Shown here: positions 16,669-63,800 of the stretch, one piece after another
Numbering within the stretch: the first letter of the stretch is position 1
How the letters are laid out: each line of letters begins with the position of its first letter
Origin: Monocercomonoides exilis PA203
Lineage: Eukaryota; Protista; Preaxostyla
Direction: 5' to 3'
Length of the DNA stretch: 64,000 bases
Assembly: GCA_001643675.2 (NCBI GenBank)
Contig: LSRY02000002.1
Span: 2,480,001 to 2,544,000, forward strand
The notes under the pieces: model-generated
Told to the model about the DNA's origin: nothing
The model's input: only the letters and a program-made list of their open reading frames with translations
Database searches by the model: none
Program-made: the position numbers and the translations under genes

Positions 16669-17154
16669 GCTAATAAAGTATTTTTTATTTTAATTTAATA
16701 TTTTTCTATCATTTGGCAATCAAAATTATAAGTGCTAATTAAAATAATTGGCCATATTTGTGATTCCTTTTTTTTTTATGTTCATTTCATAATAGCGAAT
16801 TGATGTTACATTCTTATTTGGTTTCTCTTTATTCTTCTGTGTTTGTGACTCATGTTTTTGTTTTGTTTTCATGTTCGTAATTATTCCTTACAAACCATGC
16901 TATTTTCCAGAGGTTTTTATTTCTATATATTGTTGGAATTAAAAGTATTGGATCTTTACGAATCGTCTGTGATATTTATTGTACCGCATTTATTGTGGGT
17001 GCATTTTTCAATGATTTTTGATTGCTGTCAAAATTGATTCTTTATTTTTTTTTTTTTCATTCATTTTTATTGTGTTTTTATTTGTTTATATCAACAAACA
17101 TCTACTTTAAAAATAATTTAAATTTTTTTATTCTTATTTATCCGACAAATTTTA

Positions 17155-17650
17155 GGTAAGTGGGAACAAAACGTACTGTTCAAAATGCTTCTAAAAAGGT
17201 AAATGTTCGTTATCAAAATAAGAAATAAGTCCATGAGGGATATTTTTATTGGTAAATTTAATCTTATTTGAATAATTGAATTGGTGACCCATTTTTGAAA
17301 TTTTTAATCAGCAAAACACCTGTTTTTTTTATCTTTTTTGACAAATAAAACCCTAATCAGTGATTTAGGTTCATATTTTAATTTATATTATACCCTAATT
17401 CACTCGTTGTGAAGGCATTGAAACCAATAGCCTCTCCAAAACCTAATTAGAAATTTTGAGAAATAATATTATTAGGGTTTGATCATAGATTTTTTGATGA
17501 AAAAGGTGATTATTTATCACTTGAATTTTGAGTTGAAAATGAATATTTCAATTTTATTGATTGCTTAATATACATTTAGCGTTGCTTTTTTTTAGAAATA
17601 AAACTCTCTTTGTGTTATTTTTAGAATAGTACGTTTTGTTCCCATTCACC
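17155..17650. mobile_element. Non-autonomous DNA transposon (MITE-like, Merlin/IS1016-type termini), 496 bp
   Basis: 27-bp TIRs GGTAAGTGGGAACAAAACGTACTGTTC / revcomp GGTGAATGGGAACAAAACGTACTATTC (24/27); perfect 8-bp TSD AAATTTTA at 17147-17154 and 17651-17658; no ORF. Confidence 0.9.
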
Positions 17651-17733
17651 AAATTTTATAGCAAAAAGCGCATTTGCTCTTTTATTTCAAAAAGTTTTTT
17701 TTATCAGAAAAACGACGAATTGAATAAAATATT

Positions 17734-39117: not shown

Positions 39118-39189
39118 GGGCTTGTCCGGGAATTGAACCCGGGACCTCTTGCACCCTAAGCAAGAATCATACCACTAGACCAACAAGCC
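39118..39189 (-). tRNA. tRNA-Pro(AGG)
   Basis: GGCTTGTTGGTCTAGTGGTATGATTCTTGCTTAGGGTGCAAGAGGTCCCGGGTTCAATTCCCGGACAAGCCC: acceptor stem, D-arm, anticodon loop TTAGGGT, GTTCAATTC T-loop; T-rich downstream. Confidence 0.97.
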
Positions 39190-53700: not shown

Positions 53701-56700
53701 AACTCCGCGGATTGTGAGTGATTTACCAACTCTTCTCATCTCTCCAGAAACCCAGTTGTGGTTATTGATCTGGACAGTCGTTTGGTTCTCTTTCAGGTTG
53801 CCAACACCAACTTCCAATCGATCGCATGGATTCGCATCGCTTCCACAGTTCGGCAAAGTGCTTTTTCCTGCCTCAACAAAGATGATATCTCCTGTTCCAG
53901 AAAACAGATATTTCTTGATCGAGTAATCAATTTCTGTGCTTTCGACCGAGTCCATAACCCAGAAATTTGGCTCAGGCGTGTTCAGCTCGTCGATTGTCCC
54001 AAACCACAGATCTTCTTTGATCAGCGCTTCTGGATTCCCGCAAAGCAGTAATAAGTCGTTTCCCTTTGAAGCAAGATTTCCTGTGAAAGTGTTTGACTTC
54101 ATAGAATACTGTGCATTTGCATCGAATTTCAGGTGCAGCCCTCCTCCATATCCCTGTGCTCCCAGTGCTGTGCAGCTCTCCACTCTGTTCTGAGTGAAAA
54201 TCAGCTCTCCTCCATCCGACACATTCAATGCCCCCATCCCGCCAAACGGAACCTCTCCTTGGCACATATCTTTTGAAAACGCACAGTTGCTGATCTCCAC
54301 TCGCTTTCCTTGCCCAACAACTCCCGAAAAGACTGAGCCATTCCCGTTGTTTCGAGTCACGTTCGACAATTCGCTTGATGCAATTTTCATTCCATTTCCT
54401 TCCCCAAAAGAAATAACACTGCCACTTTCCAGTGCTGAGCCATTGACTGTTAGCTTCTTGATATCGGCTGAAGATTCACCAGTCAAGTGAATCAGTCCAT
54501 CATGTGACAGACTCTCAACCGCTTCAAAAGTGCATCCTACTACAAATAAAGATGTTCCTTGTCCGCTCAGCTCGACTGCTGTAACTTCTCCAAAATCAAT
54601 TCTTTTCAGCTCAAATTCAGTTAAATGTACTTCGCCTCCTGTTGCACAAAAAATGCTGAATTCGATTGCCTCGCTTTCTATTTGCCTTGTCGCTGAGCAA
54701 TTAGCAATACTCAAAGATAATCGCTGGCACAGAATCAGACATAATCGAGGTGTTTCAACGAAGCTCGAAGGCATTGAAAAAGTGATATTCGAAATCGAAA
54801 CATCTGCTGCTGTCTCAATCAATCCATCCCCTTCCACGCTTCCGTTGCTGCAGACAAAAATTGATGTGCCTTTTGTTGTTGCCAAAATTGAAACAGAACA
54901 CGAGGCAAGCCTTGTGAAGCTGTCCAGCTGAAACGATGGAAGAACCACAACAACACCATGCTCTTGCACTGATTCAAATCTCAATTCAACAAGTCTGCCA
55001 ATTGAATGGCAAGGTGCAAATTGAAATCCGCATCCTGAGTGATCGTATCCTCCATCTTCCTCACCCCCAACATATCCGCTTCCTGAAAATGAAGTTAGAA
55101 ATGCAGCCAAAGGAATCGCATAGTCTCTATTACAGGAGACTCGTTCATATCCCATCAAATCTGTTTTGTCCATCTCCCTCCAAGATATTTGGAAGTTATC
55201 TGCTCGAACTGCTTCAGCCAAGTTGTTGGCATCCACAAATATGCTGTTTCCTTTCCATGCATTGCATTCAAAGAACGTCAGGTTTTTAAGCGAATAAACT
55301 CCATTATTATCTGAAATATGCAGATATATCCCTCCTCCTAATCCTCTTCCTCTGTTTAATTCTTCGCTGCTTGGCGCATTACAGCTGCTGAATCTGGTGT
55401 TCTTCACAGCAATGTTCATATTCCCATGTTTCTGGATAAACAAAGCTCCTCCTTTCAGCTCGTTTCCGTCTTTACATGATGAACTTATCTGGCATCCGTC
55501 AATCACAATCTCACAGCTTCCTCTATTCCCATATGCACTGAACAGTCCCCCATTTCCATTTTTTACGGTTATTCCGTTGAATTCGCAGCTCTGCAACGTG
55601 AATGAGCTTCCCCCCTCTAATAAAAACGGACTTATTAAAAACGTAATTTGGTTTGTTTCTGCAACAACAACAAAACCATTTGCAACAAATGTTCCACCAC
55701 TAATTTTTGTAAAGCTGAAATTGATTTCGTTGCTTTCTTCTGAATTAGTTATAGAAAGTCCGCAACTGTTTAATGTTAGGCTATTTCCGTTGCACTGAAT
55801 GAATGATGTTCTGGAGTTGAGCGATAATGGCAAAACAAAAGTGATATTTGTTATTGTCGCTGGCTGAGTGACTGTTATTAAAGAAGATGAATCTGTAAGG
55901 GGTGGCGGAGAAACAGCAATTCTAGTATTTTTTTGGGCACATTTGACTTTCTATTGGCAAACACTCATTCCTATCTCTTCGCTCCAAACAAATGAAGGAT
56001 CGAGAATGATATCTTTATTCAATGAAGAAAAGCGAAGATTTGCTACGAATGCAATTGTGGAGCAGGGATAGCCGGAATGACCACATCCACTGAAGTCTCT
56101 CTTGTTGTTTCCTCCAACCACTGCTGGTAGAGGGAATGGATCAATTAAATAAAGAGCTAGAGGAATTGCATAATCTTCATTGCCATTTTCGAATCCCATT
56201 GCATCATCGTATTCTGCTGCATTTGTTGAGATGAAAGAATTCACTTTTCCAGAATTCATCAAATCTGCCAAATTTGTATCATCAAAAAACATGTTGTTTC
56301 CTCCTTTCGCTGCATAATTTTTTTCAACGCCGCTCGTAAAATTGATTGAAGATATATAATAATCATTGAACTGACCAGCAGCCTTCACAAACAACCCTCC
56401 CCCGTATCCGCATTGAGTTCTTGTATCACTTGCTCCACACTTTGAAAACGATGTGAGCGTTCCATCTTTTCCGATGCTCAGCTTTCCGCTTCCAGCAAAC
56501 GAAGCATATATCCCTCCTCCACAACCAGAGCAAGCCAAACAATTGTAAAATGTTGCCTCACTAATCTCAACAACATTTCCTGTATTCATCACAATATTCA
56601 CTGCGCTTCCATTTCCGTTTGCGAGTTCAATGGATTTCATGTTGATTTTTTCCATTTTCACTGTTTTTCCATTTTCAATCGTTATAGCTGCCTTGTTGTC

Positions 56701-59700
56701 ACATACAATTCCTTCCATTGTCGAATTCTGAAGAGTCAGTGAACCTCCGTTTGTGCATTCAATTATTCCTTCGTTTGATGCGGCAGTTGTATTCGAAATG
56801 TTGCAAAGATCAATGTTTAGCTGCCCGTTCGTGTGTGAAATCATCAGCGGTGCTTCTAAAAGGCTGAACCCTTTCATCATAAGCGATTTCACTGTACTTG
56901 TTCCACCCATGCAAATTATAAAGCTGCAAGACAACGTTGTGCCTGACATAAGCATCAGTGCACACTGCTCAGACAAGAAAGATCCTGACTGTACCAGAAA
57001 TAGAGCTTCCCTTCCAGATAGCGAACTCGGCAGATAAAACTTGATGCTCGAAAAAGAAGTTGTTGCTCTGCTAACAATCATCCCATCTTGATTTTTTGTC
57101 GAATTATCGTTTACGATGAACTGTGTCTGAGCTCTAATCCCTCGAACACTTGTAGTGCCTTCAGACAGAGATATCTCTCGTGAAAGAGTGGAACTTCCAT
57201 CAACAGCAATTGATACACCACTTGATGTTTTGTGTTGCAAGAGAACATAATCGACAGTTGAGCATTGCTCGTCAGCAAATCCACACATATACCAATCTCT
57301 TTTATTTGTATTTCCAACATAAAACTCGCTCGGTTTGCTTCGGAGATAAAGTACAAGAGGAATCGCAAACGAATGATTGTTATTTTCGTATCCACACAGA
57401 TCAGTGAGTACATTCAGTTGAGGGCTGAACTTCAGCCGCTCTGCATTGATCACTTGGCTGAAATTCGCTGCCTCAATAAAAATGTTGTTGCCGAATTGCG
57501 AAGCACTGCAGTTGGCGAATGTCATCTTGTCAAAGACAAAATCACATGCAGAGCTTTCCAATTTTAGGTAAATTGCACCCCCGTATCCGTTGTTGCTTGT
57601 TCCCTGTGCACCACAGTCGGTAAAAGTCAGCGAATCAATTTCTCCAAGTCTCATTTTTGAGCCAGGTTGCATTATAATGGAAAGGCATCCTCCATTTCCA
57701 TTCTCGCACTTGCACCTATCAAAAGAGATGTTGTTCAACTTCAATGATTCCTCATTTGCAGGGTTGCATTCAATCACTCCTCCATTTCCAGAGCTTCGAA
57801 TGACCTCTGTGAAGCGTGTATTTGATATCTCGGAAAAAGATGAAATTGGAGCTTTGATGAATTGAGTATTTATTTTCAAAGAAGATACAATACAGGAATC
57901 AATTGAAATGCTTCCGAAAGCAATGTCAAACAATGGATTATTGAAAGAAGTGGGCTGAGCTCTCACCGAAGTGATGAGAAGATGCTTCAGGTGAGCTTTC
58001 CCAGATGAACCAGAAATAGATAATATCCCAACTGTTTCTGTTTCGGTGTTGTGGTCAATCGTCAATGAGAAGACACTCAAAGCACCTGTATTGATGGAGA
58101 ACAGCGTAGCAGGACTTGACAGAATGCTTGTTCTGATGACTGATTTGTCTGTTCCATTTCCAATCACTTTGACTTTATTGCTGTTGATGGATAGCACAGA
58201 AGAAGGAGCAAAGGCTGATTCAAGCAGCATAACTTTACACTCGACATCGTCCCTCACCTTTCCAAATGCGTGTTCAATCGTTTTGCATGGAATAGAGTCG
58301 TTCAATCCACAAAGCTCATCCAAATCGTTTCCACTCTCATGGACATATCGAGTCAGAAGCATCACCTTTACAGGAAGCCATCCGTTGTATACTTCGCTAT
58401 CCGCTGTGCCGTTGTACCAAACTCGCTTCTCTGTTGTCGTTGAATATGATTCAAAAAAAGGATTAGAATTAACTCCACCTCCATTTATTTTCACATCATT
58501 TCCCATTCCGTTCTTCGCTTCATTTTGATGGAAAAAACAATATCTTATCAATTGGGTCTGAACAGCTTGTTCCGAAAGTCCACTGAAGTTTATTCCTGCT
58601 CCTCCTAAAATTGTTGAATTTGTAAATATTCCATTCACTGTGTTCAAGATAAACATATTTTCTGTGATCAAAAGTGCTGAAAGGTTTACACTTGGCAAAG
58701 CATAATTAAAATATATGCAACCAGAAGAATTTCCAGCCCAATTTTTCACAAAACGAGAGTTTGAAAAAATGAAGGTTCCCGATGATTGAAGAGATTTCGG
58801 ACGTAAGTAACACACCATTCCATAAGAATGTGAAATTGAGCAATTATAAAAAATAAGATCTTTGTATTGTTCATTTTTCATATGATCAACGCTGCATATG
58901 GCTCCCCCTTGGCTCGCGCTGCATATACTAAAATTTGATGAATCTACAAGTGCATTTTCCAAATTTGCAAGATATAAAGCCCCACCGTGGTTGTTTTTTC
59001 CGACCTTTATTATATTTATGTTTTCAAATAAACAATGAGAAATATTCATCGATGATCCACCGTATGATATGAAGATAGCACCTCCAAATTCATCTGGTGA
59101 TGCATTTTTCCATTCACACCAAACAAATGAATGCTCTCCTTTACCCAAAACTTTCCTCCTTGGGGATATTGGATTTTCTTCAGTTCCAGAATATTGCTCA
59201 TTGGACAAGCGATGGCAAGATACGAAAGTACTGTTGAATGAAGACAATGCAGCAAACGGCTGATTTATTGATTGAAGAATCCCTCCATAATACACATCGC
59301 AAACTCTGGAGAACGAACAGCTGCGTATAGTCGCTGTATGACAAAAAGCACTCGATTTTAAAGAACAATGAAGTATGTCATGACAAATGGGATTTGACAA
59401 ATTTTGGAATTTCGAATCTGTTACAGAAATACAGGAACAAGTCTCGCTTTGAACGAAACATGGCATCACAACCATGTCTGAAAAATGGCATCCCGCAATT
59501 TCCAATGACCAGAATCCATTAGGGTAAACCGAATTTCCTCTTGCAATTTGAGGAACCGCGGTTGGAGTATAGATAGACAAACTTGTATTATGAAGCATAA
59601 TTTCTCCATCGTCAGCTGTTATTGGGCTAATTTCCGATGAACCAGACAAACAAAGTGCACAGTTTTTAATAAATAGCGACGATGAAGATGAGCAGATAAA

Positions 59701-60021
59701 TAGAGCACTGTATTCGAGCTGACGAAGCTCAACAAAAACATACAATGACGATGCATTATTTAAATTGAATGTCGAAGAAATTGTGCAACCGTAGTGCATG
59801 CGCAAATAATTTTTTCCCTCAAAAATTGAATCATATAAGGCATCATTCATATAATTCTTAAGAGGCTTGCAATTAATCGAGTTTTGCTTCTGAGCATTTG
59901 GCGATTGGCTCACAGTGCAATCTCCAGTTATTTCGCAGTGAGCCATTGAAGTGTCGTTTTGAACGCCGAACGAATAAATAAAATAACTCGCTATAGCACA
60001 AAAAAGTTCAAATGAATTCAT
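47788..60021 (-). CDS. Giant type-I membrane protein: pectin-lyase/Pmp-like beta-helix repeats + TM + degenerate kinase C-lobe (~4077 codons, one in-frame TAG at 55951-55953; possibly a pseudogene)
   Basis: ORFs 55951-60021 and 47788-55833 are in the same frame with an open linker; signal-like N-terminus; GGA(I/L) and FxxN motifs; 8 CGxxxxxCxS/T-type repeats; TM WALIVIVMLAVLFLIVLIVSIVVTL; WKAPELL..VVFSIGMMLWECLTLQIPF. Confidence 0.85.
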
Positions 60022-60109
60022 TTCGAAAAAAAATTATATTTCACAATTAAAAGAGTCCTTTTTCATTTTCATTGTCAACTTCAATATACTGAAATCTGTG
60101 AAAAAGATT

Positions 60110-60599
60110 GGTAAGTGGGCAGATAACGACCGGTAAAAAAAATCGATTGACTTGTTTTTATTTATTTGTGCAATTTTCAATTAATGCAATTATGATATTT
60201 CGAAAGTGATTTTCGTATAACAGTGATTCAAAGCTGAGAAAACCTATTTTTTTAAATCCAACAGTAATTTTAATTTTGCTAACTTCCCCACCTTAAATAA
60301 AAAAACCCTAATCTGTTGATTAAATTAAAAGTTAATGTTAACATAACTATAATAAACACATTGACAATAGGAAAATCTTTATTTCCAATAAAAACCTAAT
60401 AAAAACAATCTCTCTAATATATCTTAGGGGTTTGATCACTTATTTTAAATAACTCCTGCTTTGTAAATACTAAAAATTTTAAGTTTTTAATCGAATATTT
60501 CTCCTATCTGCGAATTTTAACATTTGAAAATGGGTTTTTCAAGGTCAATAATTCTTCTTTTAGATAAATTTTACACCGGTCGCTATGTACCCTCTTACC
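60110..60599. mobile_element. Non-autonomous DNA transposon (MITE-like, Merlin/IS1016-type termini), 490 bp
   Basis: 25-bp TIRs GGTAAGTGGGCAGATAACGACCGGT / revcomp GGTAAGAGGGTACATAGCGACCGGT (21/25); perfect 8-bp TSD AAAAGATT at 60102-60109 and 60600-60607. Confidence 0.9.
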
Positions 60600-60833
60600 A
60601 AAAGATTAAGTTTTTTTTATTTTTTTCATAAAAATGTGATATGAATTGATATTCATTTTATTTTCTTAATGTTTTTTGTGAATAAATATATTATCAACAA
60701 GATAAATTTTTTTTTGTTGATAATGACAATTTTTGAAGAAATAAAAGAAGTTTCTTTTGATATTTCTTCAAGAAAAAAACATACCCATTAACATGTAAAT
60801 TGTCTTTGCAATAGAAATTATTTGCTGATATTG

Positions 60834-63800
60834 ATGTCTGAAGTGCCTCTAGAGACATCTTCGGTTGGGGTTTCAACCATAAAAAAACCAATAATGCTAT
60901 CACGAATGAAGCGGCGTGAAAGTCAAATGATTTCTGCTTTTGGAAACTCTGTTTGTAAAGTGTTTTTTATTAAAGTTTTAATTTTTTTCTGTTTGTTTTT
61001 TATGTGTAAATTTGTTTATGAATGTTTTTATTTTTGTTTTTTGAACTGTCATTCATTTGTTATTTATTGAAAAAAAAAAAGAATATCTGTCAAAATTCAC
61101 TTGCAGCACCGAGTGAACAAACTTCATCTGAGTTTCGAAATAATATTCTTCCATCATCGCAAGAATCTATCATAGAATCATCAAAGCGTCCAGTGTTTTT
61201 ATCTGATATGAAGCAAGGAAATGAAGGAGCTGGAACAGAAACTAAATTTTTTGGACGCTCCTTTGATACAATGGTTCCATCTGCTTTTATGCAACAAGTC
61301 CTTGGAGTGAATTTAAAAAGAAGCGAAAGCATTAGATTATCTCAACAAAAAGAAATTGAAGAAAATGAAAAAATAGAAAAAGAAATAAAAGAAAGACTTA
61401 AAAAAATGGAAAAAGAGTCGTTTGAATGCTTAAATGAGAAAGTGGAAAAAAGAGGAAATGAATTATTTTTTGGTACTCAAACGGATCCTTTAATTTTACA
61501 AATGCGTCTGCGGAATACCTTGACGCAGGAAACTCTTTTTCCTTCTGTTTCTTTTGGGCGTGTCACGGCTATTGGAGCCCGTAATAAGTTGTCTTTACAA
61601 CAAAATCCTTTTGTGGTACCTCAATATCATGCAATGCTTCCGATGATCTCAAACAAAGAGATGAACGACAGAAGAGCGAAGGAAAAAGAGAAACTAATGG
61701 AGGAGAACAAACGAAAAGTTGTGATTGCTGGATTGCAAAAGATGCGATGCAAGTCAAAAGATCGAATAAAAGTCAATTTGGACATGAACACTAACGAAAA
61801 AATAGGTCAATTTCAGACAGTGGATCAACTCCCAAATGTGACAAGTGCGAACATTACAACTATTTCATCAATGGGCCAACATAAAATCGATATGAATACG
61901 TTTCCATTGAACAACAATCAGACTTCAACCAAATACAAAAACGGTATTCGGTCGCTGCTTTCGCAGATGGTGTCACAAGATCAGCAGGAAGAGTATCAGA
62001 ATTCTTTGTCACTCGCACTTCACACAGAGATGCCTGAAGAAGCATCCAATCAGATAACACCTCAAAGCCAATCTCCTCTAAATGCTTATTCACCTGCATC
62101 TGGTTTGTTGTGTCCAGCCAACGGGCATGTCATTTCTTCTTCATCATCTTCTCGTTCTCCTTCACCCTTCCCATCTCCATCCCCTTCTCCTTCCCCATCT
62201 CCTTCGCCTTCTCCTTTGAGTAATTATTCCCACATCTCTAATGCATCTGCTTCATCTGCTTCATCTTCTTCATCGACGCCTGACTCCAGCAGCATCTGTG
62301 CTTCAAGAGGCCTGTCTCCGTTTGCCAGTCCAAAGTACTGCGACTCCTTTGTGTGTGCAATGCCCATCACTCCTTCAGTCGCTGACAGACCAGCAAACAG
62401 CCTCTCTCCTTCATCAGCACTCGCACAGGCATCCCTGTCGCTGAGCAACTTGTCGCTGCCTTCTCAGTTCTCTGCTTTCCAGCCGGCAAAATCACTCCTT
62501 GACTTCGGGCGGAGAAGGCTTGACGAACAGAATGGCTCAATCGGCATGTACTCAATCAATGAAAATGATCCTGATTCTTCATCGGATCAGCTGCAGTCTG
62601 CTTCAAATGGGAATTCTGTAGCGCCTTCTGCTCCTTCTCTTAATTCTACAGACACACAATTCACAGTTCATCGTCATCTTCTTCTTCCTTCTTTTTATTC
62701 TGCTCAGTCAGAACAGTCAACAATTGTAACAGAGACTCAGCCATCAGCTTCTTCTGCCAAATCAACTTCTTCCTTTGCCACTTCTCTTCCTTCTCAAACA
62801 TCTTCTGATGTCTCAAATGCAACTTCTGCTATTGTTTCTAGTTCTCCTTCTTCTTCTGCATCTTCTGCATCTTCCAGTTCATCAACCACAGTCAATTCTG
62901 TTCCGTCTTCATTGTTTGATGTTTCTTCATCGAAAGCTCAGAAGACACAGCTGCGTTCTTTGCTGGATTATTCATCTGCCAACCACTCAAAAAATGAATC
63001 TCCAGCAATTCTGCCAGCCTCTTTGGTTGCATCTGCCTCAAATGACAGCACAAACAGAGATGTTCTGTCTTCGCCCGAGCACAAGTCTTGTTTTCTTCCT
63101 CCGCTTTCGACTTCTCCTCCTCTTCCATCAGACATTCACACAACTTTCACGTCACTCTCCCCTTCTCCTTCTCCCTCTCCACAAAGCCCTCAACTTTCCA
63201 CTTCGCCTGTGCCAGTCGGCCTGCCTTCTTCTTCATCGCCTGCCATTCCTCTGCAAAAGTCCCCCAGAAACTCTTCTGTTCCCAATGGCTTCGCAGAGCA
63301 TTCTGCAAAAGTCGCAAAAAGAGCTCTTCCGCCACTCCGCCGCCGGCCGTCGTCTGTCGCCTCGTCTTCTCGTCTCATCGCTCCTTCTGCCAAAAGCTGC
63401 GTGTTGGCTGCTGCTGACTGCACGCACGATGACAGCAACGCACGCGATTTATCGAATGATGGAGTATTTTCTTCCTCTTCGTATTCTTCCTCTTCATATT
63501 CTTCTTCTTATTATTCATCTGCTGCTGCTTCTTCTACTTTGTCTTCTTTTGGCCATCTTTCGTCTTTTCCCTCTTCCTCTGCTGCCAACATGTTTGCCCT
63601 CCATTCCTCTCTCATTCTTCCGCCTTCTTCCAAAAACACACACAACTTCGCTCATCCCAAAGACACCCCCTTTTTCCTTCGCCCAAACACAAAAGGACGC
63701 TTTCCGCGTTGTCTTTCAACAGCAACTTCTTCTTCCTCTTCTGTCAATCTTCCTCTGTTTAGCATCAGCAGCACACATCAGCCTCATCTTCCTCATCAAC

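Follow-up and report, generated by a model that had tools for sequence, protein, structure and literature searches.

Elements A and B

The window, i.e., the whole stretch of 64,000 nucleotides of Monocercomonoides exilis PA203 DNA analyzed here, contains two short elements, A and B, whose coordinates are collected in Table 1 together with those of their internal motifs, neighboring genes and relatives. Both elements have a common start (GGTAAGTGGG), finish with an imperfect inverse of that start and are bordered by perfect 8-bp TSDs. Their copies were searched in the assembly to which the window belongs (82,301,135 bases, 101 contigs); the Nanopore assembly of this strain is described as having 101 contigs and ~82.3 Mb (PMC8767320). 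We aligned 19 full copies of family A, with 77–92% identity to the window copy, and found approximately 30 full-length matches of family B (72–95% identity), with fragments of both families besides. An 8-bp TSD accompanies both window copies and most of the other 44 genomic copies of A or B. Because the two elements exist in many copies, most of them between their own 8-bp TSDs, they are real multi-copy mobile elements, and they are devoid of coding capacity. They are MITEs: short (490–496 bp), non-coding, equipped with TIRs and TSDs and present in about 20 (A) and 30 (B) full-length copies.

Both window copies are placed in 5′ intergenic space. Element B is located between a minus-strand gene on its left and, on its right, a gene in which the RNA contigs reveal a GT..AG intron. 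The RNA contigs of the left gene extend up to ~60044, 66 bp before B, and those of the right gene begin at ~60815; no RNA contig lies over B in the four RNA runs of the single study used, an absence that is weak evidence, these being contigs.

Some copies of these MITEs are disturbed by other mobile elements. For instance, one B-family copy (L058:101-5651) is interrupted by an insertion of ~5.1 kb coding for a reverse transcriptase fragment (RVT_1, E = 1.6e-8); this locus was considered as a candidate autonomous B element and rejected, the insertion being a retroelement. At another locus (L062:101-1930), a truncated copy of the transposase-bearing family C (see below) is followed ~240 bp further on by a MITE copy resembling B (80% identity to the consensus of that family), and therefore this spot represents clustered or nested Merlin insertions.

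Table 1. Coordinates of elements A and B, their internal boxes, neighboring genes and related Merlin elements
Feature	Position	Strand	Sequence	Remarks
Element A	17155..17650	+	starts GGTAAGTGGG, ends CCCATTCACC	496-bp non-autonomous Merlin transposon (MITE), family A
Element A TSD	17147-17154 and 17651-17658		AAATTTTA	8 bp, perfect
A minor shared block	17239..17245	+	GATATTT	7-bp exact run, A vs B consensus
A box 1	17347..17358	+	AAAACCCTAATC	telomere C-strand type; shared with B at matching offset
A box 2	17392..17399	+	ACCCTAAT	invariant in A and B consensuses and in H
A box 3	17438..17446	+	AAAACCTAA	telomere-like, one C short; invariant in A, B, H
A box 4	17472..17485	+	TTAGGGTTTGATCA	inverted G-strand box and TGATCA palindrome
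A box 4 invariant core	17475-17485		GGGTTTGATCA	
A box 5	17541..17549	+	GAATATTTC	identical in A and B consensuses
tRNA-Pro(AGG) gene	39118-39189	-		genuine
Gene left of B	55951-60021	-		ORF
Element B	60110..60599	+		490-bp non-autonomous Merlin transposon (MITE), family B
Element B TSD	60102-60109 and 60600-60607		AAAAGATT	8 bp, perfect
B box 1	60302..60313	+	AAAACCCTAATC	
B box 2	60346..60353	+	ACTATAAT	mutated in window copy; B family consensus ACCCTAAT
B box 3	60391..60399	+	AAAACCTAA	
B box 4	60424..60438	+	TTAGGGGTTTGATCA	
B box 5	60493..60501	+	GAATATTTC	
RNA contigs of gene right of B	60815-62273			GT..AG intron 60951-61081
Family C	L059:101-1576; L066:843-2318			1476 bp; A-type terminus, TIRs ~130 bp, 8-bp TSDs, one gene
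Family D	L063:587-2071; L064:774-2257			1485 bp; both B-type ends, intact 348-aa gene (L063:846-1889)
Family E	L065:792-2256			third Merlin family, same transposase domain
Sister MITE	L087:344-742	-	TIR GGCAAGAATGCAC, TSD AATATTTT	399 bp, Merlin

Merlin superfamily and transposase-bearing partner families

The Merlin superfamily of DNA transposons, related to IS1016/IS1595, is defined by GG termini, 8-bp TSDs and the DDE_Tnp_IS1595 transposase domain, and elements of this kind are known from the strain: Monocercomonoides sp. PA203 has been reported to contain over 100 Merlin copies belonging to at least 7 families, with TIRs beginning 5′-GG as a criterion, in an account that mentions neither MITEs nor telomere-like motifs (PMC8101967). 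All our families start with GG and end with CC; besides A and B, the sampled copies of families C, D, E, F, and G have 8-bp TSDs, within the 8 or 9 bp accepted for Merlin. Furthermore, the autonomous partners C, D, and E encode a transposase with the DDE_Tnp_IS1595 domain (PF12762; E-values of 5e-17 and 3.7e-17 for C, 1.7e-19 for D and 1.6e-16 for E, all past the cut-off), the Zn-ribbon_IS1595 domain remaining slightly under its cut-off (21.5–21.7 bits vs 25.4). Therefore, A and B are non-autonomous Merlin (IS1595-type DDE) sister families. They resemble the published Merlin elements of PA203 in the GG termini and the 8-bp TSDs, and their partners in the size of ~1.5 kb and the single DDE_Tnp_IS1595 gene; unlike those elements, A, B and a third lineage described below (H) are non-coding and carry a conserved array of internal boxes, absent from the sampled autonomous copies (PMC8101967). 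The expectation in the earlier note that A and B might belong to an undescribed system is thus set aside in favor of a group of Merlin MITEs.

Family C was found via a search for the shared terminus, and its transposase has at least 152 genomic matches among ~900 candidates; one of the two full copies (L059) has a single in-frame stop in the transposase gene. Family D is represented by two intact copies, 97.7% identical to each other. The autonomous sample comprises two full copies of C plus partial sequence of three more, two copies of D and one of E. The ends of B match those of D at 96–100% over 27–30 bp on both sides, and the ends of A match those of C at 90% over 32 bp. Because of this TIR identity, mobilization in trans by the partner transposase can be proposed: C presumably moves A, and D presumably moves B. 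A simple origin of the MITEs by deletion from C or D was rejected, since A and B resemble these families only in the terminal ~30–120 bp. At the amino acid level, the transposases of C, D, and E share 58–65% identity with each other and 42–53% with those of the sampled families F and G; being nearer to each other than to F and G, they form one group of related transposases that the three MITE lineages match, and their closeness would fit MITE and transposase lineages diverging together.

In family C (L059:101-1576, L066:843-2318, L060, L061, and L062) the position of the end variants GGTAAGTGGG and GGTGAATGGG relative to the transposase gene (5′ or 3′) varies from copy to copy, so that ends seem to swap within this family, whose TIRs are ~130 bp long. 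Since the end variants occur at either end, the idea that A is oriented sense and B antisense to the partner transposase was dropped. The orientation of the internal module relative to the partner gene is defined for B-to-D and H-to-E only, and the two directions are opposite, which is weak evidence. Finally, two distant Merlin transposase copies (L016:209-1234 and L025:2045-2905, minus strand), 33–35% identical to family F, adjoin A-family MITEs.

Five internal boxes shared by diverged elements

Majority consensuses were built from 19 A and 26 B copies. The two consensuses give a nearly gapless alignment with 51% identity, in agreement with the earlier view that A and B are diverged relatives. 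Within this alignment, five internal exact runs of at least 8 bp (8–12 bp) are found, as compared to 0.71 expected (column shuffle, p = 5e-5), namely AAAACCCTA (box 1), ACCCTAAT (box 2), AAAACCTAA (box 3), GGGTTTGATCAT (box 4), and GAATATTTC (box 5). Outside the boxes, ungapped identity between A and B is 0.40 in register vs 0.316 ± 0.027 at other offsets. Taken together, the bodies are homologous and near saturation, pointing to one ancestral MITE. In addition to the boxes, the short GATATTT block is among the least variable windows in both the A and the B family.

The array consists of ACCCTAAT-type boxes on one strand and GGGTTTGATCA on the other, followed by GAATATTTC. The ends of A (496 bp) and B (490 bp), their TSDs and four motifs at matching offsets, as described in the earlier note, are all in the sequence, but a fifth shared motif, ACCCTAAT, had been missed, because the window copy of B is mutated there (ACTATAAT). 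Likewise, the TTAGGG-type box of that description is present in A and B, but only its GGGTTTGATCA portion is invariant. Box 1 is the least constrained of the five: it takes the form CCCTAT in approximately half of the A copies and CTCTTAT in one B subfamily.

A whole-genome search with a sequence-only covariance model of the core identified a third lineage, H, at two loci (L084 and L086), which represent one insertion present twice through a duplicated segment. The right end of H matches family E, and no left end of H was found. H keeps ACCCTAAT, AAAACCTAA, and GGGTTTGATCA unchanged in the midst of unrelated spacers; its box 4 reads GAAGGGTTTGATCA, and at the position of box 5, at matching distance, it reads GACATTTC. 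In the three-way comparison (A/B/H) three invariant runs of at least 8 bp are found, while the shuffle gives an expectation of 0.011. As for the spacing, which the earlier note had regarded as conserved, it is near-fixed in A, B, and H: start to start, boxes 2 and 3 are 44–48 bp apart, boxes 3 and 4 are 35–37 bp apart and boxes 4 and 5 are 64–66 bp apart, the exception being boxes 1 and 2 (42–44 bp in A and B, 51 bp in H). Boxes 2, 3, and 4 are found together in this pattern at 25 genomic sites, all of them in A, B or H and with a span of 91–93 bp; the reversed control gives 0. Overall, these comparisons show conservation of the boxes across three MITE lineages that appear to be paired with three transposase families of 58–65% identity.

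Apart from H, the covariance-model search returned A and B copies and weak matches. One of the weak matches (C46:138981, locus L082) was rejected: by eye it looks like open coding sequence, and the match is probably due to chance. Exact matches to box 4 at five additional genomic sites were likewise discarded as fragments or chance occurrences. The three-box pattern gave 0 matches in a metagenome scan. None of the sampled C, D, and E copies carries the box array; the sole near match in them is TGATCACACCC, at a distance of ~140 bp from the end of C.

In L084/L086 (about 305–345, minus-strand orientation) and at a further locus, L074 (about 430–465), the left part of the MITE is lacking, and a doubled GTCCGG-containing motif adjoins the remaining body. 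The motif probably marks the tip of a different transposon family, inserted into these MITEs.

We also looked for known RNA features in the elements. Rfam, searched at gathering thresholds over the whole window and at E-values up to 10 on A and B, gives no match in A or B, and ARAGORN detects no tRNA in A or B, the tRNA-Pro gene of Table 1 being the only finding of both programs. A tRNA-derived Pol III cassette in A or B was therefore rejected: there is no tRNA-like match, and box 4 makes, by eye, a poor B box in which the critical C is a T.

Variation of the boxes within families

The changes observed among the copies of a family were divided into private ones, found in one copy only and mostly due to post-insertion decay, and shared ones, found in at least two copies, which have arisen in source elements and were propagated. 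In family B, the rate of private changes is 0.0196 in the boxes, 0.0179 in the rest of the body and 0.0212 in the terminal 30 bp, while the corresponding rates of shared changes are 0.047, 0.113, and 0.0455. Thus, boxes and rest of the body have like private rates (p = 0.65) and differ in their shared rates (p = 4e-15). In family A, boxes 2–4 have a private rate of 0.0132 and a shared rate of 0.021, as compared to 0.0265 and 0.051 in the rest of the body; the difference in the shared rate (p = 8e-4) has the same direction as in B. When variability is scored in 10-bp windows, boxes 2 and 4 rank with the TIRs among the lowest in both families, and in family A neither of these two boxes contains a single shared variant. 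It should be considered that the boxes anchor the alignments and could thereby inflate the apparent variation of the AT-rich spacers, for which a family identity of 80–95% leaves little room. Lineage-level constraint was measured for families A and B only.

These data show that the boxes are protected as strongly as the terminal repeats against propagated changes and undergo neutral decay once inserted. The family-wide comparison of the boxes with the rest of the element, envisaged in the earlier note as a check, has two sides: shared variants are depleted in the boxes, but private mutations are as frequent there as in the rest of the body. Since the depletion concerns shared and not private variants, the pattern indicates selection on the spreading lineages rather than on the inserted copies. 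The proposal that conservation and spacing reflect selection, as opposed to chance or a young shared origin, is in line with these results, considering the three lineages, the 25 modules of near-constant span and the depletion of shared variants to the level of the TIRs.

Relation of the boxes to telomere repeats

The genome yields 24,354 pattern matches to TTAGGG arrays, those listed being placed at the end of contig C1, which identifies TTAGGG as the telomere repeat of the host. The likeness to the telomere hexamer, on which the earlier note was built, holds for part of the array: boxes 1 and 2 are true telomere-type motifs matching this unit (ACCCTAA), but box 3 lacks one C and in box 4 only GGGTTT, beside TGATCA, is invariant. 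A pure telobox reading would accordingly be incomplete, because boxes 3, 4 (GGGTTT fused to TGATCA) and 5 depart from the telomere unit in a conserved manner. Furthermore, the telomere-type 10-mer AAACCCTAAT is not enriched genome-wide (101 sites; reversed control, 157), and A or B copies account for ~43 of these sites, leaving ~58 outside MITEs. Due to this lack of enrichment and to the conserved deviations of boxes 3 and 4, binding by a telomere protein is only one option. In the window, four of the six ACCCTAA sites fall within the two MITEs; one of the six is held by the tRNA-Pro(AGG) gene. We found no telomere-proximal placement of the copies (38 copies, mean relative distance 0.48, KS p = 0.54).

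In plants and fungi, single-Myb proteins of the telomere-repeat type bind telobox or Tbf1-type sites (AAACCCTAA, ARCCCTAA), and yeast Tbf1 recognizes TTAGGG. Box 1 of A and B contains AAACCCTAA, box 2 fits RCCCTAA and the host unit is TTAGGG; unlike in the telobox case, boxes 3–5 do not fit and the motif is without genome-wide excess here.

A sister Merlin MITE (L087 in Table 1) combines a tRNA T-arm relic with approximately eight CCCTA-type boxes. It has at least 9 near-full-length matches, and more distant matches to the array alone. This element, of ~400 bp, resembles A, B, and H in being a Merlin MITE with 8-bp TSDs, several ACCCTA(A) boxes ~30–75 bp apart and an end near TGATCA, whereas A, B, and H have no tRNA-like unit, fewer boxes, one of them inverted, and other TIRs. 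Homology between its array and the A/B/H module is weak (19.5 bits).

Discussion

What a MITE has in common with the transposon that mobilizes it is usually limited to the ends, and the role of the interior is poorly known. With moderate confidence, we interpret the boxes of A, B, and H as a cis-acting module that aids MITE propagation, likely by providing a docking platform for a DNA-binding protein that is itself conserved; a host factor of the telomere-repeat type is favored. An ancestral MITE would have given rise to A and B, whose bodies then diverged almost to randomness with the boxes kept at fixed spacing, as expected if the boxes raised the chance of the element being copied onward. 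The platform might be occupied by a conserved sequence-specific protein that bends or marks the short element, and the bound protein could aid the pairing of the ends or keep the element accessible; the candidate binder would be a host factor recognizing the telomere-type repeat of M. exilis itself. A host factor is favored over the transposase because the boxes are constant while the transposase-specific inner TIRs have changed between C, D, and E. Among host proteins, a telomere-repeat (Myb-type) factor is the obvious candidate, because boxes 1 and 2 are exact telomere-type motifs and the host telomeres are made of TTAGGG; such a factor is, from the motifs, a plausible binder. In a more specific and rather unlikely version of the same idea, Merlin MITEs would mimic the host telomere repeat and borrow a telomere-repeat-binding protein as an architectural cofactor, which might, e.g., loop the 490-bp element so that its ends can pair, the array being kept across three diverging transposase families.

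Alternatively, the boxes could be internal sites of the Merlin transposase itself, i.e., subterminal or internal enhancers that help to form the paired-end complex on a short element. The constraint on the boxes does equal that on the TIRs, the outer TIR (TAAGTGGG) is loosely like TTAGGG, the E-type TIR contains GGGGATCAT, close to box 4, and the TGATCACACCC motif of family C is one mismatch from the reverse of box 4; moreover, rice Stowaway MITEs reportedly possess internal sequences, absent from their autonomous partner, that raise their own mobility in transposition assays. However, these TIR resemblances are short and within the chance range, the sampled C, D, and E copies do without the array, and identical boxes are found in A, B, and H, in contrast to the inner TIRs, where the specificity is expected and which differ between C, D, and E. 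We consider this possibility unlikely, and the sampled autonomous copies without boxes tell against the synaptic-complex organizer suggested in the earlier note, insofar as it would be bound by the transposase. Much less probable is that the telomere likeness is incidental and that the array conserves a nucleic-acid structure, in which box 3 (AAACCT) would pair with box 4 (GGGTTT), as DNA in transposition or as RNA. The hairpin predicted by RNAalifold has 6+3 bp, with compensatory differences between A and B at two inner pairs, and 88.9% of cells pair vs 26–66% with the partner slid. The predicted energy is nevertheless only −2.7 kcal/mol, covariation comes down to a single A-versus-B event, H keeps only two of the three inner pairs, boxes 1, 2, and 5 are left unexplained, and the lack of an RNA contig over B and of an Rfam match also speaks against such a hairpin.

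As a further possibility, the module might act as a promoter, enhancer or boundary for the host, a portable unit recognized by a telobox factor, and insertions would be kept for the benefit of nearby genes; transposon-borne transcription-factor sites are well known in other organisms, both window copies occupy 5′ intergenic space, with B close behind the last RNA contig of the left gene, and the flanking ORF ends within 1 kb lean toward 5′ (22 vs 12, raw split). Yet the boxes are lost at the neutral rate in inserted copies, no RNA is found over B, the module has the same orientation as the 5′-facing genes in 14 cases and the opposite one in 8 (raw split), and the telomere-type 10-mer outside MITEs stays below its control (~58 vs 157), most ACCCTAA sites of the window (4/6) being in MITEs. 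Based on the missing RNA, the neutral rate of private mutations and the orientation split, we regard the portable promoter of the earlier note as very improbable, and the same applies to the regulatory unit as a whole. Least probable of all is that the boxes have no function and are surviving leftovers of an ancestral telomere-like array captured once, e.g., from subtelomeric DNA or by telomerase-mediated repair. The sister MITE with its array and tRNA relic indicates that such arrays are common cargo in this genome; on the other hand, chance survival of three invariant 8–11-bp blocks at fixed spacing in three lineages of otherwise near-random sequence has the shuffle expectation of 0.011 given above, and a depletion of shared variants at normal singleton rates is the mark left by selection acting on source copies.

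Considering the precedents again from the side of the propagation module, the Stowaway case is alike in that the internal boxes of A and B are absent from the sampled autonomous copies; it differs in belonging to the Tc1/mariner superfamily, in its motifs and in being based on assays, whereas the case for A and B comes from conservation only. Transposons can also spread transcription-factor sites, as with the E2F sites of Brassica MITEs. There, as putatively in A and B, a short protein-binding motif is multiplied by a MITE, but the inserted A and B copies give no sign of post-insertion constraint.

The significance of the array lies in the fact that it is held as strictly as the terminal repeats, across lineages that would be served by three transposases, and yet decays freely after insertion. 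This pattern points to a cis-acting requirement for spreading and not to a host benefit. The 92-bp module (17392–17485) offers a concrete target for study in M. exilis, in which transposons have hardly been investigated. Should the telomere-mimic reading be true, these elements would carry a previously undescribed, host-factor-dependent type of MITE "propagation module", and if the bound factor is a telomere-repeat protein, it would link the telomere machinery with DNA transposition.
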